Source: Scyliorhinus canicula (lineage: Eukaryota). Taken from it: a stretch of 64,000 nucleotides of DNA. The notes below the pieces were generated by a model. That model was not told where the DNA came from. It saw only the letters and a list, made by a program, of their open reading frames with translations, and did not search any database. Shown here piece by piece: positions 935 to 28,463 of the stretch. The DNA is taken from positions 16,653,360 to 16,717,359 of the forward strand of contig NC_052164.1 of the NCBI RefSeq assembly GCF_902713615.1. The letters run 5' to 3'. A program made the position numbers and the translations under genes. Numbering within the stretch: position 1 is the stretch's first letter; every line of letters starts with the position of its first letter.

Positions 935-3514
935 TGCTGGCCCCGCCACCACCCATGTGTTAAGCACCTTGGACATTGCCCTCGCAAACCCTTGCCAGAA
1001 TTCTCTAAGCTCCGGGCATGCCCAAAACATATGGACATGGTTTGCAGGGCTGCCCTTGCACCTCATACAACTGTCTTCTACCCCAAAATACTTGCTCATT
1101 CTTGCTGCCGTCATATGTGCCCGATGGACCACCTCAAATTGAATTAGACTGAGCCTGGCACATGATGAGGAGGAATTAACCCTGCCCAGGACTTCTGCCC
1201 ACACATCTGCTTCCAACTCCTCGCCTAGCTCCTCCTCCCACTTGCCCTTGAGCTCGTCCACCGGGGTTTCCTCCGCCTCCTGTAGTTCCTGGTAGATATC
1301 CAACACCCTCCCCTCCCCCACCCAGGTGCCAGAGACCACCCTGTCCTGTATCTTCAGTGGCGGCAGCGTCAGAAAGGCCACAACCTTTTTTCAGGAAGGT
1401 TTGTACTTGCAGATATTTAAAGGCATTTCCTGGCGGCAGATTACATTTGCCCTCTAGCGCCTTCAAACTGGGAAAGCTTCCATCTATGAACAGATCTCCC
1501 ATCCTTCTGATGCCTTCGCTCTGCCAGCTCTGGAACCCACCATCCATCCAACCCGGGACAAACCTGTGATTGTTGCATATCTGGGTCCAGACCGACGCTC
1601 CCTCCACCCTCTTGTACCTCCTCCACGGTCCCCAGATCCGCAGTGTCGCCACCACCGCCGGACTTGTGGAGAAACAGGTCAGCAATAACGGCAAAGGAAT
1701 CATTATCAAAGCTCCCAGACTAGTACCTTTACATGACGTCACCTCCAGCCTCCCCCCCCCCCCCCCCCCCCCCCCCATTGCCCACTTCCTAATCATAGCT
1801 ATATTGGCCGCCCAGTAGTAGTTGCGAAAGTTCGGCAGCGCCAACCCCCCCCCCCCCCCCCCCCCCCCCCGGACTGCGCTCCTCCAGCGATCTCCTGACT
1901 CACGGGGTCTTATTCGCCCACACAAAGCTCGTAATGATCCAACTCACCCGCTTAAAAAAGGCCTTAGGGATGATGATGGGGAGGCACTGAAAGACAAACA
2001 AAAATCTGGGGAGGACAGTAATTTTCACGGTCTGCACCCTCCCTGCCAGTGACAGCGGGAGAATGTCCCACCTTTTAAAGTCCCCTTCCATTTGCTCCAC
2101 CAACCGGGTCAGGTTGAGCCTGTGCAGGGCATTGGGCATCCCATTTCCTGGCCACCTGTATACCCAGGTAACGAAAACTTTTCTCTACCATCCTGAGCGG
2201 CAGCTCTTTCAGTCTCTCCTGCTGCCCCTTGGCCTGGATCGCAAACAACTCGCTCTTTCCCATGTTCAGTTTGTACCCTGAAAAACTACCAAAATCCTTC
2301 AGGATCCGCAGAACCTCCCCCATCCCGTCCACAGGATCCAAAATGTACAGGAGCAAATCATCCGCGTACAGCGAGACCCGATGCTCCACCCCCCGCACCC
2401 CCCGAACCACTCCCCGCCAGTTCCGAGAGGCTCTCAGCGCCATAGCTAGTGGTTCTATAGCTAGGGCAAATAGTAACGGGGAGAGGGGACACCCCTGCCT
2501 CGTTCCCCGGTGAAGCTCGAATTACCCCGACCTCAGCCGGTTTGTACATACACTTGCTACAGGCGCCTGGTACAGCAATTTCACCCAGCCGATAAAGCCC
2601 TCACCAAACCCGAACCTCCCCAGCGTTTCCCAGAGGTACTCCCACTCCACCCGATCAAAGGCTTTCTCTGCGTCCATCGCTGTTACCACCTCCACCTCCC
2701 CTCCCTCTGAGGGCATCATAATAATATTTAAAAGTCTCCGGACATTGGTATTGAGTTGTCTGCCTTTAACAAACCCAGTCTGGTCTTCCTCTATCACCCC
2801 TGGGACGCAATCCTCAATTCTTGTGGCCAGAATCTTAGCTAGCAATTTGTCATCCACGTTTAAAAGCGAAATCGGCCTGTATGACCCGCAATGTTCCGGG
2901 TCCTTCCCCCGTTTAAGAATGAATGAGATTAAAGCCTGTGACATTGTTGGGGAGAGGGTCCCTTTCTCTCTAGCCTCATTGAAGGTCCTCATCAGGAGTG
3001 GGCTCGATAGTTCTGAAAATTTCTCATAGAATTCTACCTGATAACCGTCCGGCCCCAGGGCTTTACCCGATTGCATGCCCTCTATACCCTTGACAATCTC
3101 CTCCAATTCAATTGTGGCCCCCAGCCCCTCCACCAGCTCCTCTTCCACCTTTGGAAACTTCAACTGGTCCAAAAATTGCCTCATCCCTTCTACTCCCGTC
3201 GGGGGCTCCGACTCGTATAGTTTACCATAGAACTACTTAAAGACTCTGTTCACTCACCCTGGATCCAAGACCGTGTTACCCTCCTTATTCTTTACTCCCC
3301 GATATCTCTGGCCACCTCCCTCTTTCGCAGTTGGTGTGCCAGCATTCTACTCGCTTTCTCCCCATACTCATAGACTGGCTCCTTTGCCTTCCTCAGCTGT
3401 GCAACCGCTTTCCCTGTGGTCAGCAGTTCAAACTCCGCCTGCAGACTCCACCGATCCATCAGTAGCCCCACCTCGGGGGCCTCCGCGTATCTCCTGTCCA
3501 CTCGGAGTATCTCC
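935..3514 (-). mobile_element. L1-clade LINE ORF2 fragment (RT domain and C-terminal CCHC), 5'- and 3'-truncated, frameshifted
   Basis: Minus-strand ORFs give [37 protein letters not shown] and CMRC...HMFWAC; the 5' end abuts the hsp30 spacer sequence at ~3514. Confidence 0.9.
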
Positions 3515-3734
3515 TCCCACTCTGCTCAATATCACGTCAACATGTTAAAAATAAATGACAAGAGCAAAACTAGAAAGACAAAGACTGAACCCTCATTCAC
3601 TCACAATATCAGTTTATATTCCATTCTGTTAAACACACCTGGTTGATAAAGAATCTGACATTGCTGCACACACTGCCTGCTGCTATGCTGTCACTCATTA
3701 ACATTGCTCCTCCCATCTATGATGTCCCTGGCTG

Positions 3735-3908
3735 AGAACATTCCGAAAATCTCTGGAAAGGCTCCAGTGGGTGTCACTGAGTCGAGTCATTCTCCTTTAA
3801 ATAAATGATGAGATGAGACGTTATTTATTGTCAACTCACGGGTCATGAACCCAGCAAAGTTGAGTTCATTCTGGAAGAGTCTGCATTTCTGGCAGTAGAA
3901 TATATAAG
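3735..3908 (+). promoter_or_regulatory. hsp30 copy 1 promoter: distal HSE (3735-3759, third unit mutated), partial proximal HSE, TATA box 3901-3908
   Basis: aGAAc aTTCc gaAAa tcTCt gGAAa; TATATAAG 100 nt upstream of the ATG. Confidence 0.75.
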
Positions 3909-4000
3909 GCGTGTGTTCTGAGTGCTGCAGCAGATCAGAGACTGAAGACTGACAGTTCACATCAGTGGCTTTGAGAGAAGTGAGAGAAGAGGCAGAGACA

Positions 4001-4594
4001 ATGCTGAGCTGTCGGGCTTTCCCCCCTTCACGTCTGTGCCAGCAGCCTGTGTACACATTGTGGCCTGTTCCACACAGGGTCTGTCAGCCACTGGAATGCA
4101 AAATGTGGAATCAGGTGGAAGAAGCAAGAAAGAGCATGAACTTCACGGATAGAGTTCTTGGGGAGCTGGCAAAAGAATTTTGGGAGGATAAGCCAAACAA
4201 TCAGGACAGCCGACCTGATGATAATGAAGAAGGTAAAAGACAATCAGGGGACAAGGATGGAGATGGATTTTCTCTGTCCCTGGATGTGCAGCGATTCTCC
4301 CCAGAAGAACTGAAGGTGAAAGTACTTGGAAGAAAAGTGCTGGTGACAGGAAAACACGAGAAGAAAAGGGATGATGGCAGCGGCTCTTACAGCTACAAAT
4401 ATGAAGAGTTCAGGAGAGAATTTCAGCTGCCAGACGATGCCGATGCTGAAGCTCTGAACTGCTGTTTGTCACAGGACGGTCGGTTAAAGGTTCAATCCCC
4501 ACGCCTGGCACTGCCAGCCGGGCATGAACGAACTGTGCCCGTCAGCATCACCTCTGACATAACAACCACACCCCCCACCCCGGCTAAATCCTGA
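4001..4594 (+). CDS. hsp30: Small heat shock protein HSP30/HSPB9-like, copy 1 (197 aa; alpha-crystallin domain intact, C-terminal tail cut by a +7 frameshift)
   Basis: ATG at 4001; FSLSLDVQRFSPEELKVKV...FRREFQLPDD...LSQDGRLKV alpha-crystallin domain; LWP N-terminal motif of HSP30; intronless. Confidence 0.85.
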   Translation: MLSCRAFPPSRLCQQPVYTLWPVPHRVCQPLECKMWNQVEEARKSMNFTDRVLGELAKEFWEDKPNNQDSRPDDNEEGKRQSGDKDGDGFSLSLDVQRFSPEELKVKVLGRKVLVTGKHEKKRDDGSGSYSYKYEEFRREFQLPDDADAEALNCCLSQDGRLKVQSPRLALPAGHERTVPVSITSDITTTPPTPAKS

Positions 4595-5284
4595 CCAAGA
4601 GGCACAGAGACAGGAGAGTGGGAAGGATGAGAAGAGAAATTAGGTGGATGGGAAAATGGACAATTAAAACTCATTTCCAGTGAAATTTTGTAAGAAGTAG
4701 GAATTGTTTATAGACAGACATGAGTTTCTGTGACCCTGACATGAGGGGACAATGCTGAAAGTTAATTATTTCCACTTGTATTCCACTTGTCAGCGTTAAT
4801 GTGGAGTATTTCTATGTGTATGTATATTGGAATAATAAAAACTTTCGAATGAAATGATGATGATTTGGCTTTTTTACTTCATAGAAAGAAATTGATATTA
4901 AACAACTGGAATCTAAATAATGACGTCCTTTCCACTCAGTAAAAAAAAACTTATTTAAAATTGGATTAATTTAAAACCCAGACAAATAATTCAATCATCA
5001 GCCAAGATCTGCCTCAAAGAGAATTTAGCTCATTAAAAGATATATCAAACTATTGTACAGAGCCAGTGCCCCAACACCTCTGTATTACTCTCCAGCCTCA
5101 CAATGAGCAGCAGCAACAGCTTTTCATCCAACACAGACAAAAGACAGGACACCACTCAATTACTGAATGGTAGTAACATCTTTCATTGGGGTTATCTGTT
5201 CGATATAAATTTCTGGGAATAAACCACGCCAACAGCTTTGCAAACAACTTTTATTTTGCATTATTTATTTGTATAATATTTTTT

Positions 5285-6345: not shown

Positions 6346-6724
6346 AGGCACGATTCAACTAAAAGGGAACAAAGTCCCACAGCGAGCGCGTTTAGCCTCA
6401 TGCTTCCCTGTGATTGCAGCGCTGAGAAACACATGGCTATAAAATGCTTCTCACGTTAAATAGTGGGCATAATTGGGGAAGGCCAAGGCCGCGCATAGCC
6501 CCATTTTGTGAATTGAGGAGCTCCGCTCACCAGATCCCCTCAGCGCAGCAAGAGATCGGGATGTATTTTTAAATGGCATCTTGATCTCCAAGGCCCAAGG
6601 TGCAACCCCCCATTCCCATCCCCCCCAAGGCCCAACGCACAATAAGAGGGTTCCAGCCCCCCACCCACCCACCCAAAACCCACCCCAGCACCTTCGGCCC
6701 GATCACCAGCACACAAAAAGATGT

Positions 6725-7085
6725 TGTTGTGCCAGTGGGACTCGGAGCTACTGAAGGTGGGGGTGTGGGTGAGTGACCTGGCAGAATTCCAGCATTTGGA
6801 GAACAGGAAGATCTCATTACGGGGGATTTGGGGGGGGGGAAGGAGCTGTTCAGCCGGAGGTGGAAGCCGTTCATCGATTACATCAAGGTGGATTAAGGTG
6901 TCAGCCGGGGTACGGGGAGGGGGGTTGGTTTTGGGGGGAAAATAAGAGGGGGAAAAGCCAAGGGGGCAGGAAGAGTTGTGGGCTTGATATCGGTGGTTGT
7001 TGTGGGCCTGTGTCCTTTGTTTCTGTGGTTTTCTGGTATATCTATGTACATATGCAAAATGCCTTCCCGGAATATTTTTTCAAAA
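6725..7085 (+). mobile_element. Old L1 3'-end fragment lying downstream of each minus-strand hsp30 (paralogs ~13170-13672, ~26200-26570, ~33890-34255)
   Basis: Similar to the L1 ORF2 end (WRDS.PP...W..DL.EF..LE.., RRW.PFID) followed by a G-rich 3'UTR and A-rich tail. Confidence 0.7.
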
Positions 7086-7417
7086 AGGGAATTCATTCCC
7101 TGGGTTTCAAAATAATCCAATTGACAATGATTTTTTGTTTTACTGAGTGTTAAATAAGTAAGTACCTAGTTTTCAGTTGTTTAATATCAATTCATTTTTA
7201 TGAAGTAATACAGCTGAATCATCATCAATACATTCAAAAGTATTTATTATTCCAATATACGCATACTTAGAAATAATCCGCAACAATGCTGGTAACAGCA
7301 CAGTACCAAAATAAAATAATTAACTTTCAGCATTATGCCCTCAGGTCAGGATCACAGAAACCCATTTCTGTCTTTAAACAATTCTTACTTCTCACAAAGG
7401 TTCACTGTAAATAAGTT

Positions 7418-8077
7418 TTAATTGTCCACTTTCCCATCCACCTCATTTCTCTTCTCATCTTTCCCACTCTCCCGTCTCTGTGCCTCTTGGTCAGGATTTA
7501 GCCGGGGAGTGGTTTTTGCGTCAGAGGTGATGTTGACGGGCACAGTTCGTTCATTCCCGGCTGGCAGTGCCAGGCGTGGGGCTTGAACCTTTAGCCGACC
7601 GTCCTGTGACAAACAGCAGTTCAGAGCTTCAGCATCGACATCGTCTGGCAGCTGAAATTCTCTCCTGAACTCTTCATATTTGTAGCTGTAAGAGCCGCTG
7701 CCATCATCCCTTTTCTTCTCGTGTTTTCCTGTCACCAGCACTTTTCTTCCAAGTACTTTCACCTTCAGTTCTTCTGGGGAGAATCGCTGCACATCCAGGG
7801 ACAGAGAAAATCCATCACCATCCTTGTCCCCTGATTGTCTTTTACCTTCTTCATTATCATCAGGTCTGTGGTCCTGATTGTTCGATTTTTCCACCAGAAA
7901 TTCTTTTGCCAGCTCCCCAAGAACTCTATCCATGAAGTTCATGCTCTTTCTTGCTTCTTCCACCTGATTCCACATGTTGCATTCCAGCGACTGACAGACT
8001 CTGTGTGGAACAGGCCACAATGTGTACACAGGCTGCTGGCACAGACGTGAAGGGGGGAAAGCCCGACAGCTCAGCAT
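7418..8077 (-). CDS. hsp30: HSP30/HSPB9-like, copy 2 (219 aa, intact)
   Basis: ATG at 8077, TAA at 7418; complete alpha-crystallin domain and VPV motif; TATA and HSE upstream. Confidence 0.9.
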   Translation of the reverse strand: MLSCRAFPPSRLCQQPVYTLWPVPHRVCQSLECNMWNQVEEARKSMNFMDRVLGELAKEFLVEKSNNQDHRPDDNEEGKRQSGDKDGDGFSLSLDVQRFSPEELKVKVLGRKVLVTGKHEKKRDDGSGSYSYKYEEFRREFQLPDDVDAEALNCCLSQDGRLKVQAPRLALPAGNERTVPVNITSDAKTTPRLNPDQEAQRRESGKDEKRNEVDGKVDN

Positions 8078-8169
8078 TGTCTCTGCCTCTTCTCTCACTT
8101 CTCTCAAAGCCACTGATGTGAACTGAAAGTCTTCAGTCTCTGATCTGCTGCAGCACTCAGAACACACGC

Positions 8170-8343
8170 CTTATATATTCTACTGTCAGAAATCCAGACC
8201 CTTCCAGAATGGACTCAACTTTGCTGGGTTCATGACATGTGAGTGGACAATAAATGACGTCTCATCTCATCCTCGATTTAAAGGAGAATGACTCGACTCA
8301 GTGACACCCACTGGAGCCATTCCAGAGATTTCCGGAATGTTCT
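8170..8343 (-). promoter_or_regulatory. Copy 2 promoter: TATA box, CRE-like TGACGTCT, HSE 8319-8343
   Basis: aTTCc aGAga tTTCc gGAAt gTTCt inverted nGAAn array; cttatata at ~8170. Confidence 0.8.
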
Positions 8344-8440
8344 CAGCCAGGGACATCATAGATGGGAGGAGCAATGTTAATGAGTGACAGCCTAGCAACA
8401 GGCAGTGTGTGCAGCAATGTCAGATTCTTTATCAACCGGG

Positions 8441-8786
8441 AGCTGAGAGATTCTGGATATATCAGTAATTCACTATTCATTTTCAATATTTGCAAACCTG
8501 ACAACAAGTTACCTAACGGACAACAGGTAAATTATAAACTTTATTTGTACCTATTTGATTTTTAAATATATATTAACATTCATACAAGGGAACAAATGCC
8601 TCTCTGTGGGATAGAATCAGAACCTCACTGAAGCTAAACCAAACTGGTTTGAATTTCCCTCCTTCCCACTCTGCTCAATATCACGTCAACATGTTAAAAA
8701 TCAATGACAAGAGCAAAACTAGAAAGACAAAGACTGAACCCTCATTCACTCACAATTTCAGTTTATATTCCATTCGGTTAAACACA
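8441..8786. other. Unique 346-bp spacer between the inverted arms of hsp30 pair A
   Basis: Bounded by gattctttatcaaccggg and its reverse complement cccggttgataaagaatc. Confidence 0.9.
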
Positions 8787-8883
8787 CCCGGTTGATAAAG
8801 AATCTGACATTGCTGCACACAATGCCTGCTGCTAGGCTGTCACTCATTAACATTGCTCCTCCCATCTGTGCTGTCCCTGGCTG

Positions 8884-9057
8884 AGAACATTCCGGAAATA
8901 TCTGGAAAGGCTCCAGTGGGTGTCACTGAGTCGAGTCATTCTCCTTTAAATCAAGGATAAGACGAGACGTCATTTATTGTCAACTCACGGGTCATGAACC
9001 CAGCAAAGTTGAGTTCATTCTGGAAAGGTCTGGGTTTCTGGCAGTAGAATATATGAG
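8884..9057 (+). promoter_or_regulatory. Copy 3 promoter: HSE 8884-8908, variant TATA (TATATGAG)
   Basis: aGAAc aTTCc gGAAa taTCt gGAAa. Confidence 0.75.
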
Positions 9058-9149
9058 GCGTGTGTTCTGAGTGCTGCAGCAGATCAGAGACTGAAGACTG
9101 GCAGTTCACATCAGTGGCTTTGAGAGAAGTGAGAGAAGAGGCAGAGACA

Positions 9150-9809
9150 ATGCTGAGCTGTCGGGCTTTCCCCCCTTCACGTCTGTGCCAGCAGCCTGTG
9201 TACACATTGTGGCCTGTTCCACACAGGGTCTGTCAGTCGCTGGAATGCAACATGTGGAATCAGGTGGAAGAAGCAAGAAAGAGCATGAACTTCATGGATA
9301 GAGTTCTTGGGGAGCTGGCAAAAGAATTTCTGGTGGAAAAACCAAACAATCAGGACAACAGACCTGATGATAATGAAGAAGGTAAAAGACAATCAGGGGA
9401 CAAGGATGGAGATGGATTTTCTCTGTCCCTGGATGTGCAGCGATTCTCCCCAGAAGAACTGAAGGTGAAAGTACTTGGAAGAAAAGTACTGGTGACAGGA
9501 AAACACGAGAAGAAAAGGGATGATGGCAGCGGCTCTTACAGCTACAAATATGAAGAGTTCAGGAGAGAATTTCAGTTGCCAGACGATGTTGATGCTGAAG
9601 CTCTGAACTGCTGTCTGTCACAGGACGGTCGGTTAAAGGTTCAAGCCCCACGCCTGGCACTGCCAACCGGGAATGAACGAACTGTGCCCTTCAACATCAC
9701 CTCTTACATAACAACCACCCCCCGGCTAAATCCTGACCAAGAGGCACAGAGACAGGAGAGTGGGAAAGATGAGAAGATAAATGAGGCGGATGGAAAAATG
9801 GAAAATTAA
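9150..9809 (+). CDS. hsp30: HSP30/HSPB9-like, copy 3 (219 aa, intact)
   Basis: ATG at 9150, TAA at 9809; AATAAA at 9983-9988. Confidence 0.9.
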   Translation: MLSCRAFPPSRLCQQPVYTLWPVPHRVCQSLECNMWNQVEEARKSMNFMDRVLGELAKEFLVEKPNNQDNRPDDNEEGKRQSGDKDGDGFSLSLDVQRFSPEELKVKVLGRKVLVTGKHEKKRDDGSGSYSYKYEEFRREFQLPDDVDAEALNCCLSQDGRLKVQAPRLALPTGNERTVPFNITSYITTTPRLNPDQEAQRQESGKDEKINEADGKMEN

Positions 9810-11010
9810 AACTCATTTACAGTGAACTTTTTAAAGAAGTAAGAGTTGTTTATCGACAGAACTGAGCTTCTGTGACCCTGACAGGGGACAATGCTGAAAG
9901 TTAATTATTTCCACTTGTATTTTGGTACAGTGCTGTTGTCAGCGTTAATGTGGAGTATTTCTATGTGTATGTATATTGGAATAATAAATACTTTTGAATG
10001 AAATGATGATGATTTGGCTTTTTTACTTCATAGAAAGAAATTGATATTAAACAACTGGAACTAAATAATGACTTATTTTCCACTCAGTAAAAAAAAACTT
10101 TTAAATTGGATTAACTGAAAACCCAGACAAATAATTCAATCAGCCAAGATCTGCCTCAAAGAGAATTTAGCTCATTAAAAGATATATCAAACTATTGTAC
10201 AGAGCCAGTGCCCCAACACCTCTGTATTACTCTCCAGCCTCACAATGAGCAGCAGCAACAGCTTGTCATCCAACACAGACACAAGACAGGACACCACTCA
10301 ATTACTGAGTGGTGGAAACATCTTTCATTGGGGTTACCTGTTTGACATAAATACCTGGGAAGTAAACCATCCTAACAGCTTTGCAATCTTCTATTTCACT
10401 TTATTTATTTATTTAATTAAAAAATAAATTTAGAGTACCCAATAATTTGTTTTCCAATCAAGGGGTAATTTAACGTGGCCAATCCACCTGACCTGCACAT
10501 CTTTGGGCTGTGGGGGTGTGACCCTCATCAACATAGGGAGAATGCGCAAACTCCACATGGACTGTGACCCAGAGCCGGGATCGAACGCGGGAGGCAGCAG
10601 CAAACAACTTTTATAATGTTTCAGTTCAATAACATTATTGATCCAGGACCCTTGATCATCAGAACTTTAATAAGGAGCAGTTGTAGGCCATTCATCTGCT
10701 TCAGTCTCCTTCACCTTTCAATAGGATCATTGGTTGCCATCTTCCAAGATTATATAGATTCTGGAGCAGTTCCTATTGGTTAGAGGGTAGCTCATGTAAC
10801 CCCACTATTTAAAAGGGGAGGCAGAGGTAAACACAGAATTATAGACCAGTCAGCCTGACATTGGTAGTGGGGACAAATTTAAAGTCCATTATCAAAGAAT
10901 TATTAGCAGACCACTGAGAAAACAGTCAGAATCAGACAGAGAACATGGATTTACCAAAGGGAATTCATGTTTGACAAATCTATGGGAATTCTTTGAGGAT
11001 GGGGCATTTG

Positions 11011-11353
11011 GGGCAGCATGTTAGCATGGTGGTTAGCATAAATGCTTCACAGCTTCAGGGTCCCAGGTTCGATTCCCGGCTGGGTCACTGTCTGTGCGGA
11101 GTCTGCACGTCCTCCCCGTGTGTGCGTGGGTTTCCTCCGGGTGCTCCGGTTTCCTCCCACAGTCCAAAGATGTGCGGGTTAGGTGGATTGGCCATGCTAA
11201 ATTGCCCGTAGTGTCCTAAAAAGTAAGGTTAAGAGGGGGGTTGTTGGGTTACGGGTATAGTGTGGATACGTGGGTTTGAGTAGGGTGATCATGGCTCGGC
11301 ACAACATCGAGGGCCGAAGGGCCTGTTCTGTGCTGTACTGTTCTATGTTCTAT
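11011..11353 (+). mobile_element. tRNA-derived SINE, long HE1-like form with CR1-type 3' tail (duplicate at ~30590-30932)
   Basis: A box TAGCATGGTGG and B box GGTTCGATTCC; V-domain-like core; tail gggccgaagggcctgt...(ttctatg)n; absent from the paralogous CR1 fragment at ~5880. Confidence 0.85.
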
Positions 11354-13074: not shown

Positions 13075-14165
13075 GGTACAGCAGGCAGTAATGAAGGCAA
13101 TTGGGATGTTGGACTTCATTGCAAGAGGATTCAGGCAGCTCTTAGCTTATAGAATTCATTCTCTACTCTCGGGGTACGGGTGGCCGTGAGGCGGAGATTT
13201 TTGAAGTGTTGGAGGATCCAGGAGTCCAGGTGGGGTGAGAGGCCAATGCATTGGCCTTTGCCTCCCTGATAGCCCGGAGACGGAAGTTGATGTGCCGGTG
13301 GGACTCGGAGCCACCGGAGGTGGGGGCGTGGGTGAGTGACCTGGCAGAATTCCGGCATTTGGAGAACTATAAGTTTGCCTTGAGAGGGGGTGGGGTGGGG
13401 AAGGAGATGTTCAGCCGGAGGTGAAAGTGTTCATCGATTTCGGCAGGGTGAATTACGGTGTCAGCTGGAGGGGTCGGGGGCGGGGTGGATGGGACTTGTT
13501 TTTTCTGTATTGGGGAGGAAATAAGAGGGGAAAAGTCAAAGGGGCAGGAAGAATTGTGGGCTTGGTATCGGGGGTTGTTGTGGGCCTGTGTTCTTTGTTC
13601 CTGTGGATTTCTGGTTTTCTAATATATCTATGGACATATGCAAATTGCCTTAATAAAAATATTTTTTAAAAATAGGAGTCATTCTCTGGGTTTAAAGCTA
13701 ATACAACTTAGAACATAGAACATACAGTGCAGAAGGAGGCCATTTGGCCCATCAAGTCTGCACCGAACCACTTAAGCCCTCACTTCCACACTATCCCCGT
13801 AACGCAATAGCCCCTCCTAAACTTATTGGCACTAAGGGCAATTTATCATGGCAAATCCGCACAACTAAAGATTTTTTTTTTTTACGGAGTGTAAAGTAAG
13901 TAAATGTCTAGTTTTCAGTTGTTTAATATCAATTCCTTTTTATGAAGAAAACAGCTGAATCGGCATCATTGCAAACAAAAGTATTTATTATTCCAATATA
14001 AACATACATATAAATAATTCAGTTGACTGCTGATAACAGCACAGTACTAAAATGCAAGCAGAAATAATTAATTTTCAGGAGAATGTCCTCACGTCAGGAT
14101 CACTGAAACTAATTTCAGTCTATAACCAACTCTTACATCTTCCTAAAGTTCACTGTAAATGAGTT

Positions 14166-14825
14166 TTAATTGTCCATTTTTTCATCCGCCTCATTTCTCT
14201 TCTCATCTTTCCCACTCTCCTGTCTCTGTGCCTCTTGGTCAGGATTTAGCCGAGGAGTGGTTGTTGTGTCAGAGGTGATGTTGACGGGCACAATTCGTTC
14301 ATTCCCGGCTGGCAGTGCCAGGCGTGGGGCTTGAACCTTTAACTGACCGTCCTGTGACAAACAGCAGTTCAGAGCTTCAGCATTGACATCGTCTGGCAAC
14401 TGAAATTCTCTCCTGAACTCTTCGTATTTGTAGCTGTAAGAGCCACTGCCATCATCCCTTTTCTTCTCGTGTTTTCCTGTCACCAGCAATTTGCTTCCAA
14501 GTACTTTCACCTTCAGTTCTTCTGGGGAGAATCGCTGCACATCCAGGGACAGAGAAAATCCATCTCCATCCTTGTCCCCTGATTGTCTTTTACCTTCTTC
14601 GGTATCATCAGGTCTGTTGTCCTGATTTCCTGGTTTCTCCACCAGATATTCTTTTGCCAGCTCCTCAAGAACTCTATCCATAAAGTTCATGCTCTTTCTT
14701 GCTTCTTCCACCTGATTCCACATGTTGCATTCCAGCGACTGACAGACCCTGTGTGGAACAGGCCACAATGTGTACACAGGCTGCTGGCACAGACGTGAAG
14801 GGGGGAAAGCCCGACAGCTCAGCAT
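14166..14825 (-). CDS. hsp30: HSP30/HSPB9-like, copy 4 (219 aa, intact)
   Basis: ATG at 14825; complete domain; TATA 14918-14925. Confidence 0.9.
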   Translation of the reverse strand: MLSCRAFPPSRLCQQPVYTLWPVPHRVCQSLECNMWNQVEEARKSMNFMDRVLEELAKEYLVEKPGNQDNRPDDTEEGKRQSGDKDGDGFSLSLDVQRFSPEELKVKVLGSKLLVTGKHEKKRDDGSGSYSYKYEEFRREFQLPDDVNAEALNCCLSQDGQLKVQAPRLALPAGNERIVPVNITSDTTTTPRLNPDQEAQRQESGKDEKRNEADEKMDN

Positions 14826-15525
14826 TGTCTCTGCCTCTTCTCTCACTTCTCTCAAAGCCACTGATGTGAACTGAAAGTCTTCAGTCTCTGATCTGCTGCT
14901 GCACTCAGAACCCACGCCTTATATATTCTACGGTCAGAAATGCAGACCCTTCCAGAATGAACTCAACTTTGCTGGGTTCATGACCCGTGAGTTGACAATA
15001 AATGACGTCTCGTCTCATCCTTGATTTAAAGGAGAATGACTCGACTCAGTGACACCCACTGGAGCCATTCCAGAGATTTCCGGAATGTTCTCAGCCAAGG
15101 ACAGCAATGATGGGAGGAGCAATGTTAATGAGGGACAGCCTAGCAGCAGGCAGTGTGTGCAGCAATGTCAGATTCCTTTTAAGAAGTAAGAGTTGTTTAT
15201 CGACAGAAATGAGCTTCTGTGACCCTGACATTAGGGCACAATGCTGAAAGTTAATTATTTCCACTTGTATTTTGGTACTGTGCTGTTGTCAGCGTTAATG
15301 TGGAGTATTTCTATGTGTATGTATATTGGAATAATAAATACTTTTGAATGAAATTATGATGATTTGGATTTTTCACTTCATAGAAAGAAATTGATATTAA
15401 ACAACTGGAACTAAATAATGACTTATTTTCCACTCAGTAAAAAAAAACTTTTCAATTGAATTAACTGAAAACCCAGACAAATAATTCAATCAGCCAAGAT
15501 CTGCCTCAAAGAGAATTTAGCTCAT
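14271..15525. repeat. 1.25-kb direct repeat (second copy 19418-20671) flanking the first young L1
   Basis: Offset of 5147 nt; only a handful of differences by eye. Confidence 0.95.
14918..15091 (-). promoter_or_regulatory. Copy 4 promoter: TATA box and HSE 15067-15091
   Basis: Same nGAAn array as copy 2. Confidence 0.8.
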
Positions 15526-18500
15526 GTTGCAGGAGACACATCTGAAAGTGTCGGACCAGACCAGGCTAAGGAAGGGCTGGATTAGCCAGATCTTCCACTC
15601 GGACTCGAAGTCCAGAGGGGTGGCAATCATGATCAACAAGCGCGTGCAATTTGAGGCAGAGGGCATATCCGCAGACAGGGGGGGCAGATACCTGATGGTA
15701 CGGGGCAGACTGGAGGGGAGAAGAGTGGTGCTGGTGAATATATATGCCCCGAACTGGGATGACGTGGACTTCATTAAAAGAGTGCTGGGGAAGATCCCGG
15801 ACCTGGATTCTCGCAGGCTAATAATGGGAGCGGACTTTAACATGGTCCTTGAGCCGACTTTGGATCGGTTGTGTCCCAGAACGGGTAGACTCTCAGGAAG
15901 TGCAAGGGAGCTCAAAGGGTTTATGGAGCAAATGGGGGCAGTGGACCCCTGGAGAGATAGACAGCCAACAGGAAGGGGCTACTCGTTTTACTCGCACGTC
16001 CATAAAGTATATTCCAGGATAGATTTCTTTGTACTAAGCAGGAACTGTATGGGGGAGGTAAAGAACACGGAATACTCAGCAATTACCATTTCAGACCATG
16101 CCCCGCATTGGGTGGACCTGCAGTTCGGGAAGCGAGCTATCAACGCCCGCAATGGAGGCTAGATGTGGGACTGCTGTCGGAGGAGGGGATCTGCGAGAGG
16201 CTTCGCAAATGTATAAAAAATTACCTGCAGGTGAATGACACTGGGGAGGTCTCAGCGGCGACCGTGTGGGAGGCGCTAAAGGCAGTAGTGCGGGGGGAGC
16301 TGATTTCAATTGGAGCCCATAGAGCCAAGGCAGACCGGGCAGAGATGGATAGATTGGTCAGGGAAATGGGCCGGATAGATGAAGAGCACGCGGAGTCCCC
16401 GGGGGAGGTTTTACTCAGGGAAAGGCAGAGGCTACAGGCGGAACTGGGGGCACTATCCACGAGCAGGGCCGTGGAACAGCTTAGGAAGGCGAGGGGAGTG
16501 GTGTACGAGTATGGGGAAAAGGCTAGCAGACTGTTAGCGCAGCAACTTAGGAGGAGGGAGGCGGCCAGGGAAATAGGTAGAGTGAGGGACGAGGGGGGGC
16601 ACAAAGTGGAGGATCCGGCAGAATTGAATAGGGTATTCCGGGACTTCTATCGTAAGCTGTATACTTCGGAGCCGCCAGAAGAACCGGAGGGGATGAAAAG
16701 GTTTCTGGATGGGTTAACTTTCCCAACAGTTGGGGGGGGGGGGGGCGAGTGGAAGAGCTGGGGGCCCCGATTAGAGTAGAGGAGGTATTGGGGGGCCTAA
16801 AGGCCATGCAGTCGGGGAAGTCCCCGGGACCGGATGGATACCCAGTAGAGTTTTATAGGAAGTTCTCTGAGCTGGTGGGCCCGGTCTTGGCGAGGGTTTT
16901 CAATGAGGCAAGGGACAGAGGGACCCTGCCGCCGACGATGTCACAAGCCACCATATCTCTGATATTAAAGCGGGGTAAAGACCCGGAGGTGTGCGGGTCC
17001 TACAGGCCAATCTCCCTGATTAATGTAGATGCCAAGCTCCTGGCAAACGTACTGGCGGGTAGAATGGAGGACTGTGTACCGGAGGTGATTGGGGAGGATC
17101 AAACGGGGTTCGTGAAAGGTAGGCAGCTGGCGGCCAATCTGAGGAGATTGCTCAATGTGATAATGATGCCCCCGGCGGGTAGAGAGGTGGAGGTAGTGGT
17201 GGCTATGGACGCCGAGAAGGCCTTTGACCGGGTGGAGTGGGAATATCTATGGGAGGTGCTCGGACGGTTTGGGTTCGGGGAGGGATTGGTGGATTGGATC
17301 AAATTATTATATCAGGCCCCGAGGGCCAGCGTCAGGACCAACAGAGAAGTGTCGGAGTACTTTAGGTTGTACCGAGGGACCAGGCAGGGCTGCCCGCTCT
17401 CCCCGCTGCTGTTTGCGCTGGCCATAGAGCCGCTGGCGATTGCGCTGAGAGCCGCAGAGGGTTGGAAGGGGATGGTGAGGGGCGGGGTTGAACATAGGGT
17501 TTCTCTTTATGCAGACGACCTGCTCCTGTACGTGTCGGACCCAGTGGCCGGGATGGGAACTATACTGGGAATGCTGAGGGAGTTCGGCCAGTTCTCAGGA
17601 TACAAATTAAATACGGTCAAGAGTGAAATGTTTGTGGTACAGGCAAGGGGCCAGGAGAACAGATTGAGAGGGCTACCGTTTAGGTTAGTTGAGGAAAATT
17701 TCCGGTATTTGGGAATCCAGGTGGCGCGAGACTGGGGCAGGCTGCACAAGTTAAATTTGGCCAGGGTGGTGGAGCAAATGAAGGGAGAGTTTCGGAGATG
17801 GGATGCACTCCCGCTGTCGCTGGCAGGGAGTGTGCAGACTGTAAAGATGACAATCCTCCCTCGATTTTTGTTTATTTTTCAGTGCCTCCCGATCTTTATC
17901 CCACAGTCCTTCTTCAAAAGAGTTAACGGGCTGATCATGAGCTTTGTCTGGGCGGGAAAGTCTCCGCGGGTGAAGAAGGCGATGTTGGAGAGGAACCGCA
18001 GCGAGGGAGGGCTGGCGTTGCCGAGTCTGGTCAATTATTACTGGGCGGCCAACATCGCTATGATAAGGAAGTGGATGGTGGGTACAGGGTCTATTTGGGA
18101 GCGAGTGGAGGCGGCTTCGTGCAGGGGCTCCAGTTTGGAAGCCCTGGTCACGGCTCCTCTACCGCTGCCGCCGGCCAAGTACACCACCAGCCCGGTAGTG
18201 GTGGCGACCCTGCGGATATGGGGCCAGTGGAGGAGGGATGTGGGGGAGATGGGGGCGTCTGTCTGGGCGCCAATCTGCGACAACCATCGGTTTGCCCCCG
18301 GCAGTATGGATGGGGGGTTCCGAGTATGGCGGCGAGCAGGGGCGGGAAGGGTGGGTGATATGTTCCTGGAAGGGAGCTTCGCGAGTTTGAGGAGCTTGGA
18401 GGAGAAATTTGGGTTGGTAGGGGGAAATGATTTTAGATACCTACAGCTGCGGGACTTTGTTCGTAGACAGGTCCCATCTTTCCCGCGCCTCCCGCCAATG

Positions 18501-19418
18501 GGGATCCTAGACAGAATAGGCTCTGGGAGGTACGAAGGGGAGGGTAGAGTCTCAGGTATTTATAAGGTGCTCATGAGGGAGGAAGGGTCCCAGACAGAGG
18601 AACTGAAACTTAAATGGGAGGAGGAGCTAGGCGGGGAAATGGAGGATGGGCTGTGGGCAGAGGCCCTGAGTAGGGTAAACTCGACCGCGACATGTGCAAG
18701 GCTCGGGCTGATCCAATTTAAGGTCGTTCACCGGGCCCATATGACGGTGGCTCGGATGAGCAAATTTTTTGTGATAGAGGACAAATGCGCTAGGTGCGCG
18801 GGAGGACCAGCGAACCATGTGCACATGTTTTGGGCATGCCCTGAGCTGAGGGGGTACTGGGAGGGATTTGCGGGGGTCATGTCCCAGGTGCTAAAAACAA
18901 GGGTGGTGATGAGTCCAGGGGTGGCAATTTTTGGGGTTTCGGAAGACCCAGGCGTCCAGGGGGAGAAAGCGGCCGATGTGCTGGCCTTTGCTTCCCTGAT
19001 AGCCCGGCGACGAATATTATTGGCGTGGAGGGACTCAAAGCCCCCGAAGACTGAGTGGTGGCTTGCGGACATGTCAAGTTTCCTGGGGATGGAAAAAATT
19101 AAGTTCGCCTTGAGGGGATCTGTGCAGGGGTTCACCCGGAGGTGGCAACCATTTATTGACTTCTTTGCGGGAGAGTGAGCGTCAGCAGGGGGGTGGGGGG
19201 AGGGGGGGGGGGGGGGGTAGAGTAGAGTAGGAGGGAAAATATGGCGGGTAGTACGGGTGGGAGGGGAGCGGGCTTGTGCAATACGGTATGATGGAAGTAT
19301 TGAAAGTACGTGGATGTTTGCACATTTTTGCCTTTTTTGCTTCCTTTCTGATGATGTCTGTAACTGTTTATAAAGCCAAAAACTACCTCAATAAAATTGT
19401 TTATTAAAAAAAAAAAAA
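15524..19418 (+). mobile_element. Young 5'-truncated L1-clade LINE (ORF2 from MLQETH: EN, RT, CCHC; G-rich 3'UTR; poly-A); two frameshifts
   Basis: ORFs 15524..16162, 16108..16779 and 16749..19178 with [25 protein letters not shown] and CARC...HMFWAC; AATAAA then A13 at 19406-19418. Confidence 0.95.
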
Positions 19419-19972
19419 GAGGTGATGTTGACGGGCACAGTTCGTTCATTCCCGGCTGGCAGTGCCAGGCGTGGGGCTTGAACCTTTAACTGACCGTCCT
19501 GTGACAAACAGCAGTTCAGAGCTTCAGCATTGACATCGTCTGGCAACTGAAATTCTCTCCTGAACTCTTCGTATTTGTAGCTGTAAGAGCCACTGCCATC
19601 ATCCCTTTTCTTCTCGTGTTTTCCTGTCACCAGCAATTTGCTTCCAAGTACTTTCACCTTCAGTTCTTCTGGGGAGAATCGCTGCACATCCAGGGACAGA
19701 GAAAATCCATCTCCATCCTTGTCCCCTGATTGTCTTTTACCTTCTTCGGTATCATCAGGTCTGTTGTCCTGATTTCCTGGTTTCTCCACCAGATATTCTT
19801 TTGCCAGCTCCTCAAGAACTCTATCCATAAAGTTCATGCTCTTTCTTGCTTCTTCCACCTGATTCCACATGTTGCATTCCAGCGACTGACAGACCCTGTG
19901 TGGAACAGGCCACAATGTGTACACAGGCTGCTGGCACAGACGTGAAGGGGGGAAAGCCCGACAGCTCAGCAT
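19388..19972 (-). pseudogene. hsp30: HSP30/HSPB9-like, copy 5: near-identical to copy 4 but the 3' end is replaced by antisense L1 tail (ends VPVNITSFFFFNKQFY*)
   Basis: ATG at 19972; homology stops at 19418 at the L1 poly-A; promoter intact (HSE 20214-20238), so it may still be expressed. Confidence 0.75.
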
Positions 19973-20669
19973 TGTCTCTGCCTCTTCTCTCACTTCTCTC
20001 AAAGCCACTGATGTGAACTGAAAGTCTTCAGTCTCTGATCTGCTGCTGCACTCAGAACCCACGCCTTATATATTCTACGGTCAGAAATGCAGACCCTTCC
20101 AGAATGAACTCAACTTTGCTGGGTTCATGACCCGTGAGTTGACAATAAATGACGTCTCGTCTCATCCTTGATTTAAAGGAGAATGACTCGACTCAGTGAC
20201 ACCCACTGGAGCCATTCCAGAGATTTCCGGAATGTTCTCAGCCAAGGACAGCAATGATGGGAGGAGCGAAGTTAATGAGGGACAGCTAGCAGCAGGCAGT
20301 GTGTGCAGCAATGTCAGATTCCTTTTAAGAAGTAAGAGTTGTTTATCGACAGAAATGAGCTTCTGTGACCCTGACATTAGGGCACAATGCTGAAAGTTAA
20401 TTATTTCCACTTGTATTTTGGTACTGTGCTGTTGTCAGCGTTAATGTGGAGTATTTCTATGTGTATGTATATTGGAATAATAAATACTTTTGAATGAAAT
20501 TATGATGATTTGGATTTTTTACTTCATAGAAAGAAATTGATATTAAACAACTGGAACTAAATAATGACTTATTTTCCACTCAGTAAAAAAAAACTTTTCA
20601 ATTGAATTAACTGAAAACCCAGACAAATAATTCAATCAGCCAAGATCTGCCTCAAAGAGAATTTAGCTC

Positions 20670-23600
20670 ATGTTGCAGGAGACACATCTGAAAGTGCCGG
20701 ACCAGACCAGGCTAAGGAAGGGCTGGATTAGCCAGATCTTCCACTCGGACTTGGACTCGAAGTCCAGAGGGGTGGCAATCATGATCAACAAGCGCGTGCA
20801 ATTTGAGGCAGAGGGCATATCCGCAGACAGGGGGGGCAGATACCTGATGGTACGGGGAAGACTGGAGGGGAGAAGAGTGGTGCTGGTGAATATATATGCC
20901 CCAAACTGGGATGACGTGGACTTCATTAAAAGAGTGCTGGGGAAGATCCCGGACCTGGATTCTCGCAGGCTAATAATGGGAGCGGGTTTTAACATGGTCC
21001 TTGAGCCGACTTTGGATCGGTTGTGTCCCAGAACGGGTAGACTCTCAGCAATGGCAAGGGAGCTCAAAGGGTTTATGGAGCAAATGGGGGCAGTGGACCC
21101 CTGGAGAGATAGACAGCCAACAGGAAGGGGCTACTCGTTTTACTCGCACGTCCATAAAGTATATTCCAGGATAGATTTCTTTGTACTAAGCAGGGACTGT
21201 ATGGGGGAGGTAAAGAACACGGAATACTCAGCAATTACCATTTCAGACCATGCCCCGCATTGGGTGGACCTGCAGTTCGGGGAAGCGAGCTATCAACGCC
21301 CGCAATGGAGGCTAGATGTGGGACTGCTGTCGGAGGAGGGGGTCTGCGAGAGGCTGCGGAAATGCATAAAAAATTACCTGCAGGTGAATGACACGGGGAA
21401 GGTCTCAGCGGCGACCTTGTGGGAGGCGCTAAAGGCAGTAGTGCGGGGGAGCTGATTTCAATTGGGGCCCACAGAGCCAAGGCAGACCGGGCAGAGATGG
21501 ATAGATTGGTCAGGGAAATGGGTCAGATAGATGAAGAGCACGCGGAGTCCCCGGGGGAGGTTTTACTCAGGGAGAGGCAGAGACTACAGGCGGAACTGGG
21601 GGCACTATCCACGAGCAGGGCCGTGGAACAGCTTAGGAAGGCGAGAGGAGTGGTGTACGAGCATGGGGAAAAGGCTAGCAGACTGTTAGCGCAGTAACTC
21701 AGGAGGAGGGAGGCGGCCAGGGAAATAGGTAGAGTGAGGGACGAGGGGGGGCGCAAAGTGGAGGACCCGGCAGAATTGAATAGGGTATTCCGGGACTTCT
21801 ATCGTAAGCTGTACACTTCGGAGCCGCCGGAAGAACCGTAGGGGATGAAAAGGTTTCTGGACGGGTTAACATTCCCAAAAGTTGGTGGGGGGCGAGTGGA
21901 AGAGCTGGGGGCCCCGATTAGAGTAGAGGAGGTATTGGGGGGCCTTAAGGCTATGCAGTCGTGGAAGTCCCCGGGGCCGGATGGATACCCAGTAGAGTTT
22001 TATAGGAAGTTCTCTGAGCTGGTGGGCCCAGTCTTGGCGAAGGTTTTCAATGAGGCAAGGGACAGAGGGACCCTGCCGCCGACAATGTCACAAGCCACCA
22101 TATCTCTGATATTGAAGCGGGGTAAAGACCCGGAGGTGTGCGGGTCCTACAGGCCAATCTCCCTGATTAATGTAGATGCCAAGCTCCTGGCAAAGGTACT
22201 GGCGGGTAGAATGGAGGACTGTGTACCGGAGGTGATTGGGGAGGATCAAACGGGGTTCGTGAAAGGTAGGCAGCTGGTGGCCAATCTGAGGAGATTACTC
22301 AATGTGATAATGATGCCCCCGGCGGGTAGAGAGGTGGGGGTAGTGGTGGCAATGGACGCCGAGAAGGCCTTTGACCGGGTGGAGTGGGACTATCTATGGG
22401 AGGTGCTCGGACGATTTGGGTTCAGGGAGGGATTGGTGGATTGGATCAAATTATTGTATCAGGCCCCGAGGGCCAGCGTCAGGACTAACAGAGAAGTGTC
22501 GGAGTATTTTGGTTGTACCGAGGGACCAGACAGGGCTGCCCGCTCTCCCCGCTGCTGTTTGCGCTGGCCATAGAGCCGCTGGCGATTGCGCTGAGAGCCG
22601 CAGAGGGTTGGAAGGGGATGGTGAGGGGCGGGGTTGAACACAGGGTTTCTCTTTATGCAGACGACCTGCTCCTGTACGTGTCGGGCCCAGTGGCCGGGAT
22701 GGGAACTATACTGGGAATGCTGAGGAAGTTCGGCCAGTTCTCAGGATACAAATTAAATACGGTCAAGAGTGAAATGTTTGTGGTCCAGGCAAGGGGCCAG
22801 GAGAACAGATTGAGAGGGCTACCGTTTAGGCTGGTTGAGGAAAATTTCCGGTATTTGGGAATCCAGGTGGCACGAGACTGGGGCAGGCTGCATAAGTTAA
22901 ATTTGGCCAGGATGGTGGAGCAAATGAAGGGAGAGTTTCGGAGATGGGATGCACTCCCGCTGTCGCTGGCAGGGAGGGTGCAGACGGTAAAGATGACAAT
23001 CCTCCCTCGATTTTTGTTTATTTTTCAGTGCCACCCGATCTTTATCCCACAGTCCTTCTTCAAAAGAGTTAACGGGCTGATCATGAGCTTTGTCTGGGCG
23101 GGAAAATCCCCGCGGGTGAAGACGGCGATGTTGGAGAGGAACCGCAGCGAGGGTGGGCTGGCTTTGCCGAGTCTGATCAATTATTACTGGGCGGCCAACA
23201 TCGCTATGATAAGGAAGTGGATGGTGGGTACGGGGTGTATTTGGGAGCGGGTGGAGGCGGCTTCATGCAGGGGCTCCAGCTTGGAAGCCCTGGTCACGGC
23301 TCCTCTACCGCTGCCGCTGGCCAAGTACACCACCAGCCCGGTAGTGGTGGCGACCCTGCGGATATGGGGCCAGTGGAGGAGGCATGTGGGGGAGATGGGG
23401 GTGTTTGTCTGGGCGCCAATCTGCGACAACCATCGGTTTGCCCCCGGCAGTATGGATGGGGGGTTCCGAGTATGGCGGCGAGCAGGGGCGGGAAGGGTGG
23501 GTGATATGTTCCTGGAAGGGAGCTTCGCGAGTTTGAGGAGCTTGGAGGAGAAATTTGGGTTGGTAAGGGGAAATGATTTTAGATACCTACAGTTGCGGGA

Positions 23601-28372: not shown

Positions 28373-28463
28373 CGATAAAGAATTTGACATTGCTGCACAC
28401 ACTGCCTGCTGCTAGGCTGTCACTCATTAACATTGCTCCTCCCATCATTGCTGTCCCTGGCTG

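Follow-up and report, generated by a model that had tools for sequence, protein, structure and literature searches.

The hsp30 pair and its palindromic frame

How are the small heat-shock genes of the catshark Scyliorhinus canicula arranged? Within the 64,000-nucleotide stretch analyzed here (the window), two intronless genes lie head to head, one on the minus strand (coding sequence, CDS, 7418-8077) and one on the plus strand (9150-9809), each encoding 219 aa plus a stop codon and carrying an HSP20 domain. They are the second and third of eight copies in 36 kb, in the strand order + - + - - - + +, and the intronless structure is evident from an unbroken 657-nt open reading frame (ORF) in copies 2, 3, 4, 6, and 7. 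The alpha-crystallin domain (Pfam PF00011) was found in both arm proteins at residues 116-212, with E values of 1.6e-19 and 3.2e-20 and scores of 70-73 bits against a cut-off of 20.8. The nearest relatives are elasmobranch proteins named "heat shock protein beta-11-like" or "30C-like" (57-92% identity), followed by bird and turtle HSP30C-like/HSPB9 proteins (36-41% over 75-83% of the query); matches to CRYAB cover just ~40% of the query. Placed by these closest named relatives, the genes are assigned by sequence to the vertebrate HSP30/HSPB11-like subfamily rather than to HSPB1 or the crystallins, and in S. canicula they are already annotated as HSPB11/HSP30C-like. Two 213-aa candidates, P0002 and P0009 (from S. 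canicula and S. torazame), proved to be lone genes, neighborless within 10 kb, and fall outside the palindrome described below.

The two genes occupy the arms of an inverted repeat. A repeat search returned a 1096-nt ungapped core (7345-8440 against 8787-9882) that is 95% complementary, with 346 nt between its halves, and a looser outer inverted pair (7171-7316 and 9915-10060) at 84%. The left arm (7089-8440, minus strand) contains a whole hsp30-type transcription unit, from ~360 bp 5' of the ATG to beyond the poly(A) signal (AATAAA, 7243-7248). The right arm (8787-10137, plus strand) is its inverted copy, an equally complete unit with AATAAA at 9983-9988. Over their full length the arms are 91.8% identical in a gapped global alignment, with which blastn agrees. 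These searches and alignments bear out the original prediction of a ~3-kb palindrome with two head-to-head hsp30 genes around a 346-bp spacer, and the inner boundary, predicted to be sharp, reads exactly as given there: the left arm ends in ...TTTATCAACCGGG, the spacer follows, and the right arm opens with CCCGGTTGATAAA.... The inverted repeat spans promoter and CDS and comprises two mirror paralogues, as in a palindromic heat-shock pair of the Drosophila hsp70 type.

The spacer (8441-8786), which forms the palindrome center, is AT-rich and unique; a further copy lies at 27926-28271, a reversed one at 34323-34696, and a partial one at 3511-3637. Scanning 6500-10800 against Rfam, with E up to 0.1, gave zero matches. 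A candidate origin of the left spacer end as a degraded distal heat-shock element (HSE) region was rejected: its local alignment to the arm scored 24-25, which is at chance level (shuffle mean 23.2, maximum 34).

Each gene has its own promoter of ~270 bp with two HSEs. On the left (minus strand), a distal 5-unit HSE (8319-8343) is followed by a proximal 3-unit HSE (8196-8210) and a TATA box (TATATAA, 8171-8177); the right arm repeats this order on the plus strand at 8884-8908, 9017-9031, and 9050-9056. The right gene's TATA box is weakened, reading TATATGA where the other seven copies have TATATAA. The proximal HSE lies 33 bp before the TATA box in each arm, the stretch from TATA box to ATG is strongly conserved, and the 5'UTR would measure ~70 nt. 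The 5-unit HSE is present in seven of the eight copies, and its seven sites in 64 kb are every one at an hsp30 promoter (0.03 expected from shuffles). Within the pair, the distal HSEs are 540 bp apart, matching the spacing first proposed, and the four HSEs fall within ~840 bp; the distance is 872 bp from TATA box to TATA box and 1072 bp from ATG to ATG, and transcription starts, if located ~30 nt past each TATA box, would be ~930 bp apart. The pair does not have a shared promoter of the C. elegans hsp-16 type (~400 bp, with HSEs serving both genes), because either side has a separate pair of HSEs and none lies in the central 346 bp. Each arm thus qualifies by its sequence as a self-sufficient transcription unit, and the prerequisites for a putative stress induction via HSF1—HSEs and a TATA box—are present.

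Reality of the joints and possible traces of expression

Is the palindrome a product of assembly? The catshark assembly was built on 63x PacBio long reads (PMC11979771), and the arms might in principle stem from mis-joined tandem copies or from a long read that was chimeric or folded back on itself, given noisy PacBio CLR reads and a region as highly repetitive as this one, with its eight copies in 36 kb. However, 5-8% of positions differ between the arms, whose 3' ends come from separate lineages. An artifactual fold-back would yield identical arms without a unique spacer. In other samples and studies, the structure is also present in short-read contigs: a contig of run X6 spans 8425-8816, that is, the entire spacer with the edges of both arms, contigs of X9 and X1 span the left joint, and no alternative joints were seen among the contigs of the runs examined. 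Moreover, a second instance at 28 kb carries substitutions and an insert of its own, and rearranged versions occur at 15, 20, and 34.5 kb. We therefore consider an artifact extremely improbable.

Are the genes expressed? In run X7, an RNA-like library by our guess as to its kind, gene 3' ends alone are covered, by zero-mismatch contigs at 7276-7464 and 9723-9912, and the 3'UTRs of both arms appear to be present. RNA-like contigs extend to 9912-9917 in the right gene; the four runs used consist of contigs, which carry neither strand, level, nor start. In X6, whose library kind is likewise guessed, the spacer is covered at ~1/10 of gene depth, which may reflect transcription through the center or DNA in the library.

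Across 9 studies, at least 17 runs contain no less than half of the words sampled from the gene; most of these runs are RNA by our guess, and none is recorded as such or is a known heat-shock sample. Such a spread would suit small chaperones that are mainly constitutive or tissue-specific (compare avian HSP25 in the blastoderm), or decaying copies, with the HSEs as relics. This reading also draws on dN/dS values of 0.3-1.1 among copies, a range in which constraint is not strong, on a frameshift close to the C-terminus of copy 1, on the truncation of copy 5, and on the right gene's TATA variant. It is very unlikely in our judgment: the full 219-aa ORF is retained in five of the eight copies and a sixth, copy 8, remains in frame at 217 aa; the 5-unit HSE has been kept by all copies but one; the block of proximal HSE and TATA box is invariant across the shark-skate split; and the runs themselves may include stress or handling.

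Amplification and erosion of the palindrome

How far does the arrangement extend beyond the first pair? Remnants of five units had been predicted (at ~3.5, 8.6, 15.2/20.3, 28.1, and 34.5 kb), and all five were recovered, two as intact palindromes and three in damaged form. The second intact palindrome (26572-29716; copies 6 and 7 around the spacer at 27926-28271) has the same build as the first, at 93-98% identity. Its arms (26822-27918 and 28374-29462) are 95% alike, and just within the right one sits a 95-bp insert (about 28289-28383) accompanied by a 12-bp target duplication. In both palindromes, as anticipated for copies 2/3 and 6/7, the inverted repeats take in CDS, TATA box, HSEs, and, more loosely, the 3' flank. 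The remnant at ~3.5 kb (3511-4992, plus strand) consists of a plus arm (copy 1) with 127 bp of spacer and a LINE further left. At 15.2 kb (13873-15525), a minus arm (copy 4) is fused to the 3' end of a plus arm through a 1.4-kb central deletion at a TTT microhomology, and this remnant was later duplicated at 19417-20671 (20.3 kb). At 34.5 kb (34315-35778, plus strand), a plus arm (copy 8) is preceded by a spacer in flipped orientation and by 24 nt from the inner edge of the lost arm. The ~3-kb palindrome had also been taken as the unit of the cluster; the palindrome itself stands, but what was amplified is a larger block of ~5.15 kb, in which the palindrome is the core and a ~2.1-kb tail-to-tail linker the remainder (offset from copy 1 to copy 3, 5,149 bp).

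Is the inversion older than the amplification? A tree of the 3' parts splits plus arms from minus arms with 100/99 support, and the partition of promoter and 5' CDS is star-like among all copies; the inversion therefore appears to predate the amplification, with the 5' parts homogenized since. Informative sites among the four intact arms group 55 times by orientation, 0 times by unit, and once crosswise, a count that is biased against grouping by unit owing to the 99% likeness of copies 3 and 7, and that does not amount to proof against arm-to-arm conversion. Promoter variants of copy 7 are common to the oppositely oriented copies 4 and 5, and dS between arms is 0.05-0.07, as against a divergence of ~16-18% in the 3'UTR. 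Judging from these patterns, the 5' likeness across orientations most likely reflects gene conversion; the low divergence of the CDS could partly come from selection instead.

We propose that one complete hsp30-type (HSPB11/HSP30C-like) gene gave rise to an old inverted duplication, and that the palindrome, joined with the linker into a higher-order repeat, was amplified at least five times. The units would then have undergone the erosion typical of long inverted repeats: central deletion, loss of one arm, spacer flipping by recombination between arms, and transposon insertions. Gene conversion would keep promoter and 5' CDS alike in both orientations, and the 3' CDS and 3'UTR would retain the older split between plus and minus arms.

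Regulation, relatives, and precedents

Does the inverted layout matter for regulation? Under heat or proteotoxic stress, HSF1 trimers would occupy the HSEs in both arms and drive divergent transcription, each gene being read away from the center. The pair is possibly the bidirectional heat-shock module of the original prediction. In a stronger form of this idea, the four HSEs would act as one HSF1 hub with cross-arm dependence, and the layout would be kept by selection. The spacings between the distal HSEs and between the TATA boxes are inside the usual 1-kb definition of a bidirectional promoter, the spacer is well preserved in four units and 346 bp long in both intact palindromes, the little skate has an inverted pair as well, and X6 possibly contains low-level coverage of the spacer. 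There is also the precedent of C. elegans hsp-16.2/41, in which a shared HSE region drives both genes (PMC3587839). On the other hand, a full promoter lies in each arm, copies 4 and 8 retain intact ORFs, HSEs, and TATA boxes without a partner, and the HSE-free spacer has no conserved element detectable outside S. canicula. Two further points against cooperation, the head-to-tail genes in sampled stretches of five other elasmobranchs and a skate pair that works with a 5.7-kb, retrotransposon-bearing spacer, come from the comparison that follows. Overall, we regard the cooperative hub as rather unlikely.

By gene calls (651-663 nt), the genes run head to tail in the sampled stretches of Carcharodon, Mustelus, Cetorhinus, Hemiscyllium, and Hemitrygon, each stretch covering about 20 kb around one gene, such that inverted pairs may exist elsewhere in the clusters. 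These arrays (white shark, starry smooth-hound, basking shark, epaulette shark, and red stingray) belong to the same family and are likewise multicopy and intronless, with 63-86% protein identity for the queried representatives and a spacing of about 3-5 kb. Every neighbor seen in them is on one strand, whereas the catshark window alternates (+ - + - - - + +). A look-up in one other shark gave a single gene. The hsp30C-like pair of the little skate (Leucoraja erinacea; gene order + - +), like that of the catshark, consists of head-to-head mirror copies with promoter and CDS in the arms, which start ~320 bp 5' of the ATG (363 bp in the catshark). The skate arms, however, are 99% alike and end 3 nt past the stop codon, the distal HSE is degenerate, and the spacer is 5.66 kb long and contains a reverse-transcriptase ORF, in contrast to the 346 bp of the catshark. 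Between the two species there is almost no variation in the TATA box, the proximal HSE, or the sequence leading to the ATG; the TATA box is invariant in the skate promoters, and the proximal HSE keeps the same 33-bp offset from it.

Given a complete promoter for each gene and the head-to-tail order in the other elasmobranch stretches, inversion does not seem to be needed for regulation; the layout is probably a by-product of the mode of duplication rather than a regulatory requirement. We consider the account as a whole likely: a genuine old inverted duplication with self-sufficient arms, amplified and then eroded, its layout a by-product. A combined scenario, in which a recombinationally active palindromic repeat (through flips and conversion) maintains many heat-shock promoters and genes, the nearness of the four HSEs makes HSF1 firing cooperative and bidirectional, and the catshark and skate pairs originated separately from head-to-tail arrays, seems unlikely to us.

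How does the pair compare with known inverted heat-shock genes? The likeness to Drosophila hsp70 that was first suggested is fair insofar as both are palindromic pairs (PMC3924832), but the closest precedent is the hsp-16 pairs of C. elegans (PMC3587839). The worm pairs hsp-16.2/hsp-16.41 and hsp-16.1/hsp-16.48 are likewise divergent pairs of alpha-crystallin family small HSPs with HSEs between them, and the hsp-16.1/hsp-16.48 locus is itself duplicated. The larger hsp-16 cluster reportedly forms an inverted repeat (Russnak and Candido 1985). The worm pair, however, places different paralogues on one short promoter and its genes have an intron, whereas the catshark pair consists of mirror copies of one intronless gene, with an HSE-free spacer between separate promoters. 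In flies, Hsp70Aa/Hsp70Ab and Hsp70Ba/Hsp70Bb are also mirror-image heat-shock duplicates that include the promoter, although from another protein family (HSP70); they evolve in concert through ectopic gene conversion, and their flanks evolve independently (PMC3924832). The fly arms are near-identical, whereas those of the catshark match at 95% of core and 84% of 3'UTR positions and bear no clear sign of recent arm-to-arm homogenization within a unit; unlike in the fly, the palindrome was amplified as part of a 5.15-kb higher-order repeat. We found no description in the literature of palindromes or head-to-head layouts of hsp30, HSPB11, or small-HSP genes in vertebrates or sharks; heat-shock genes go unmentioned in the catshark genome paper (PMC11979771), and the avian HSP25 paper is silent on gene order.

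Fly hsp70 and worm hsp-16 have long provided examples of this layout, and current understanding is not overturned; rather, a vertebrate small-HSP case joins these classic inverted pairs. The window offers a natural experiment, as it contains pairs that are intact, copies without a partner, and a unit whose spacer is flipped: because the arm 3'UTRs are distinguishable, copy-specific RNA-seq after heat shock could show whether pairing alters output. Head-to-tail shark arrays on one side and the 99% inverted pair of the skate on the other make this family a usable system for the origin, spread, and decay of inverted duplications in large vertebrate genomes.

Geometry and promoters of the inverted gene pair

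How closely do the two head-to-head hsp30-type genes mirror one another? An inverted-repeat search returned core arms at 7345-8440 and 8787-9882, which run gapless for 1096 nt, are 95% complementary and have 346 nt between them, together with an outer, looser pair at 7171-7316 and 9915-10060 (84%). In a gapped alignment, the whole arms (7089-8440 reversed, against 8787-10137) are 91.8% identical over 1359 columns, with blastn in agreement, and the window sequence contains no N. The proposed inverted repeat is thus borne out at its position, and its inner boundaries are indeed sharp, with edges that read TTTATCAACCGGG and CCCGGTTGATAAA. Each arm holds an uninterrupted ORF of 219 codons (left, 8077 to 7418, minus; right, 9150-9809, plus) with a Pfam HSP20 domain. 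Longer GTG-started ORFs run through the 5' leader; these were set aside for the conserved ATG, which lines up with the proteins annotated in other species. The closest proteins are "heat shock protein beta-11-like" or "30C-like" from sharks, skates and rays (57-92%), followed by bird and turtle HSP30C-like/HSPB9 (~40%), and NCBI gene calls on assembly GCA_902713615.2 match copies 8, 7, 6 and 5 of the window.

The 64 kb were scanned for heat-shock elements (HSEs) of five alternating nGAAn/nTTCn units, at least four of them perfect, with shuffles as the control. Seven such elements were found versus 0.03 in shuffles, and each of the seven precedes an hsp30 ATG by ~240-265 bp. Two belong to the pair, at 8319-8343 (minus) and 8884-8908 (plus), separated by the predicted 540 bp. 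Proximal 3-unit HSEs (8196-8210, minus; 9017-9031, plus) and TATA boxes (TATATAA at 8171-8177, minus; TATATGA at 9050-9056, plus) are likewise mirrored, so that the arms take in coding sequence, TATA box, HSEs and, more loosely, the 3' flank, as the original prediction had it. TATATGA is unique to the right gene, the seven other copies having TATATAA. Aligned with three promoters of the little skate (Leucoraja erinacea), the block from proximal HSE through TATA box to ATG is nearly invariant, with an identical HSE-TATA offset of 33 bp in both species; upstream of about -240, no alignment to these skate promoters was found. At the sequence level, this speaks strongly for a functional heat-shock promoter in both arms. 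The invariant block (9017-9149 and 8078-8210 in the window; 9867-10000 and 3700-3833 in skate sequence L001; 9867-10000 in L002) includes a putative 5' leader of ~70 nt and is far better conserved than the coding region. With leader and block all but unchanged between the two species, this conservation suggests that the leader may itself be functional, for example in polymerase pausing or translation under stress.

A higher-order repeat and its remnants

Self-comparison of the window gave a repeating unit of minus arm, spacer, plus arm, ~0.9-kb right flank and a ~1.2-kb segment X, with a period of 5,149 bp (copy 1 to copy 3) once transposons are discounted. A higher-order repeat of ~5.15 kb thus has the palindrome as its core, and its genes alternate in orientation: the ~3-kb palindrome predicted as the cluster unit is present, and the unit that repeats is the longer one. 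All five predicted centers (~3.5, 8.6, 15.2/20.3, 28.1 and 34.5 kb; units 1 to 5) were recovered by self-comparison and in the unit-by-unit structure.

By blastn, the window holds eight hsp30 copies and one fragment. Copies 2 (8440-7100, minus), 3 (8787-10130, plus), 4 (15178-13875, minus), 6 (27925-26579, minus) and 7 (28374-29709, plus) are intact at 219 aa; copy 8 (34697-35734, plus) has 217 aa owing to a two-codon deletion, copy 5 (20324-19417, minus) is 3'-truncated and copy 1 (3638-4985, plus) has a frameshift near its C-terminus. That frameshift, near codon 196 (copy 1, 3965-4594), removes the C-terminal tail, and the distal HSE of the same copy carries one G-to-A change. The fragment, copy 9 (45607-45949, plus; 343 nt, 85%), is a piece coding for the alpha-crystallin domain, 10 kb past the last copy and without ORF, promoter or HSE.

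Long inverted repeats are expected to undergo central deletion, loss of an arm or a flip of the spacer. Unit 1 keeps 127 bp of spacer, followed by a LINE. Unit 3 has lost 1.4 kb at a TTT microhomology (the terminal 10 nt of the minus arm, the spacer, and the plus arm's promoter and CDS), after which came an L1 insertion and then a tandem duplication. Besides a portion of copy 4 and what is left of its lost partner's 3' end, this duplication (14271-19414 / 19418-24571; 5.15 kb, 96.9%) contains an L1 of nearly full length with endonuclease and RT ORFs; the L1 site shows an 18-bp target duplication, equivalent in the intact unit to 10158-10175. The L1 pair seems to have arisen by the segmental duplication, not by two insertions. 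Unit 4, the second intact palindrome, also has a 346-bp spacer and carries a 95-bp insert (about 28289-28383) just inside its right arm, bordered by a 12-bp direct repeat, GATAAAGAATTT, as a target duplication; the insert is probably a short transposon-derived piece. In unit 5 the spacer is reversed, and a 24-nt piece from the inner edge of one arm abuts segment X directly, as would be expected if inter-arm recombination had flipped the spacer and one arm had then been lost. A dispersed repeat of ~343 bp (11011-11353, 30590-30932, 41883-42221 and 57955-58297; 91-95% among copies) looks like a SINE; both intact units carry it in their right flanks, two more copies lie elsewhere, and both orientations occur.

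Authenticity and age of the inversion

Could the inverted arms be an assembly artefact? They differ at 5-8% of positions, their 3' ends come from separate lineages, and the second palindrome has the same build with substitutions of its own. Among short-read contigs placed at 98% identity, one of 392 nt from run X6 spans 8425-8816 and so contains the entire spacer, extending 16 nt into the left arm and 30 nt into the right. The left joint is also crossed by contigs from runs X9 (195 nt; another sample, 2024) and X1 (33 nt), and the short-read contigs contained no alternative joints or loose ends at 8440 or 8787. The 30 nt across the right joint, one short of the length counted as bridging, are support, not proof. 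The assembly was built on 63x PacBio reads with 10x, Bionano and Hi-C data (PMC11979771). Arm divergence, the second palindrome, the contigs at the joints and the data behind the assembly all argue against an artefact.

Different parts of the arms give different trees. In a maximum-likelihood tree of the 3' CDS and 3'UTR (9576-10130), plus arms (copies 1, 3 and 7) separate from minus arms (copies 2, 4 and 6) with support of 100/99, whereas the tree of promoter and 5' CDS (8787-9575) is nearly a star, with no grouping by orientation. Between arms, the promoter is 94.8% identical and the CDS 96.5%, against 83.9% for the 3' flank, a region in which plus arms from different units are 92-99% alike. 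Thus, the inversion is older than the amplification, with promoter and 5' CDS later homogenized among copies of both orientations; gene conversion would be the simplest cause. Inter-arm synonymous divergence (0.05-0.07) is well under 3'UTR divergence between arms, and the innermost ~100 bp, although 95% alike in the two catshark arms, fail to align with skate. Identity between copies 3 and 7, including 4 kb on their right, is 98.5%, versus 93.3% when the two palindromes are compared over their left halves, which indicates that a recent exchange started at the right arm's inner edge.

Transcript-like signal, relatives and mode of action

Run X7 covers the 3' ends of both genes and nothing on flanks, promoters or spacer, a pattern that we guess to be that of a 3'-tag RNA library; its zero-mismatch contigs lie in the left (7276-7464) and right (9723-9912) 3'UTRs. 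Run X6 has a depth of ~107 over the right gene body and none over the outer flanks, which the DNA runs do cover. Its depth of 10-28 over the spacer (8441-8786) and left promoter, about a tenth to a quarter of that over the gene body, could be transcription through the palindrome center or DNA in the library. At most, both arms are present in RNA-like data, from X6 and X7 libraries of guessed kind and contigs that show neither strand nor start.

How is the family arranged in other elasmobranchs? Gene calls were compared up to 10 kb away from a single hsp30-like gene per species: the white shark has four genes on the same strand with a period of about 3.65 kb, and starry smooth-hound (four genes), basking shark (six), epaulette shark (four) and red stingray (two) have same-strand neighbors only. 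In the little skate, the order is plus, minus, plus; the last two hsp30C-like genes stand head to head as a 977-nt inverted repeat (L001 3043-4019 / 9681-10657; 99%), with arms that start 320 bp ahead of the ATG and end 3 nt beyond the stop, and a 5.66-kb spacer that holds a reverse-transcriptase ORF (L001 8016-9347, minus strand). As far as this small sample shows, the usual arrangement is head-to-tail and the palindrome of the catshark is derived, and inverted pairs arose, or persisted, in two lineages or more.

Two complete, conserved heat-shock-type promoters point outward from the 346-bp catshark spacer, and both ORFs are intact. Under stress, HSF1 would bind the HSEs of each arm, and both genes would then fire divergently, each on its own; we consider it quite probable that the two arms carry independent promoters. 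A cooperative heat-shock module shared across the arms, for which proximity is the sole basis, seems unlikely, given that the central spacer is without an HSE, partnerless copies retain intact promoters and ORFs, other species have tandem arrays and the skate pair tolerates a 5.7-kb spacer.

The closest precedents are the divergent pairs of C. elegans hsp-16 small-HSP genes (PMC3587839) and the palindromic Drosophila hsp70 pairs under concerted evolution (PMC3924832). The catshark pair lacks the one short shared promoter of the former; like the latter, its arms are mirror duplicates with the promoter included, and the predicted likeness to the inverted hsp70 pair holds. A non-exhaustive search, with older frog hsp30 papers outside it, turned up no published account of such an arrangement in sharks or for vertebrate hsp30/HSPB11. 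The palindrome is real, the first reading of its structure is correct, and the kind of layout is already known; the catshark hsp30 palindrome adds to the known inverted heat-shock gene pairs.
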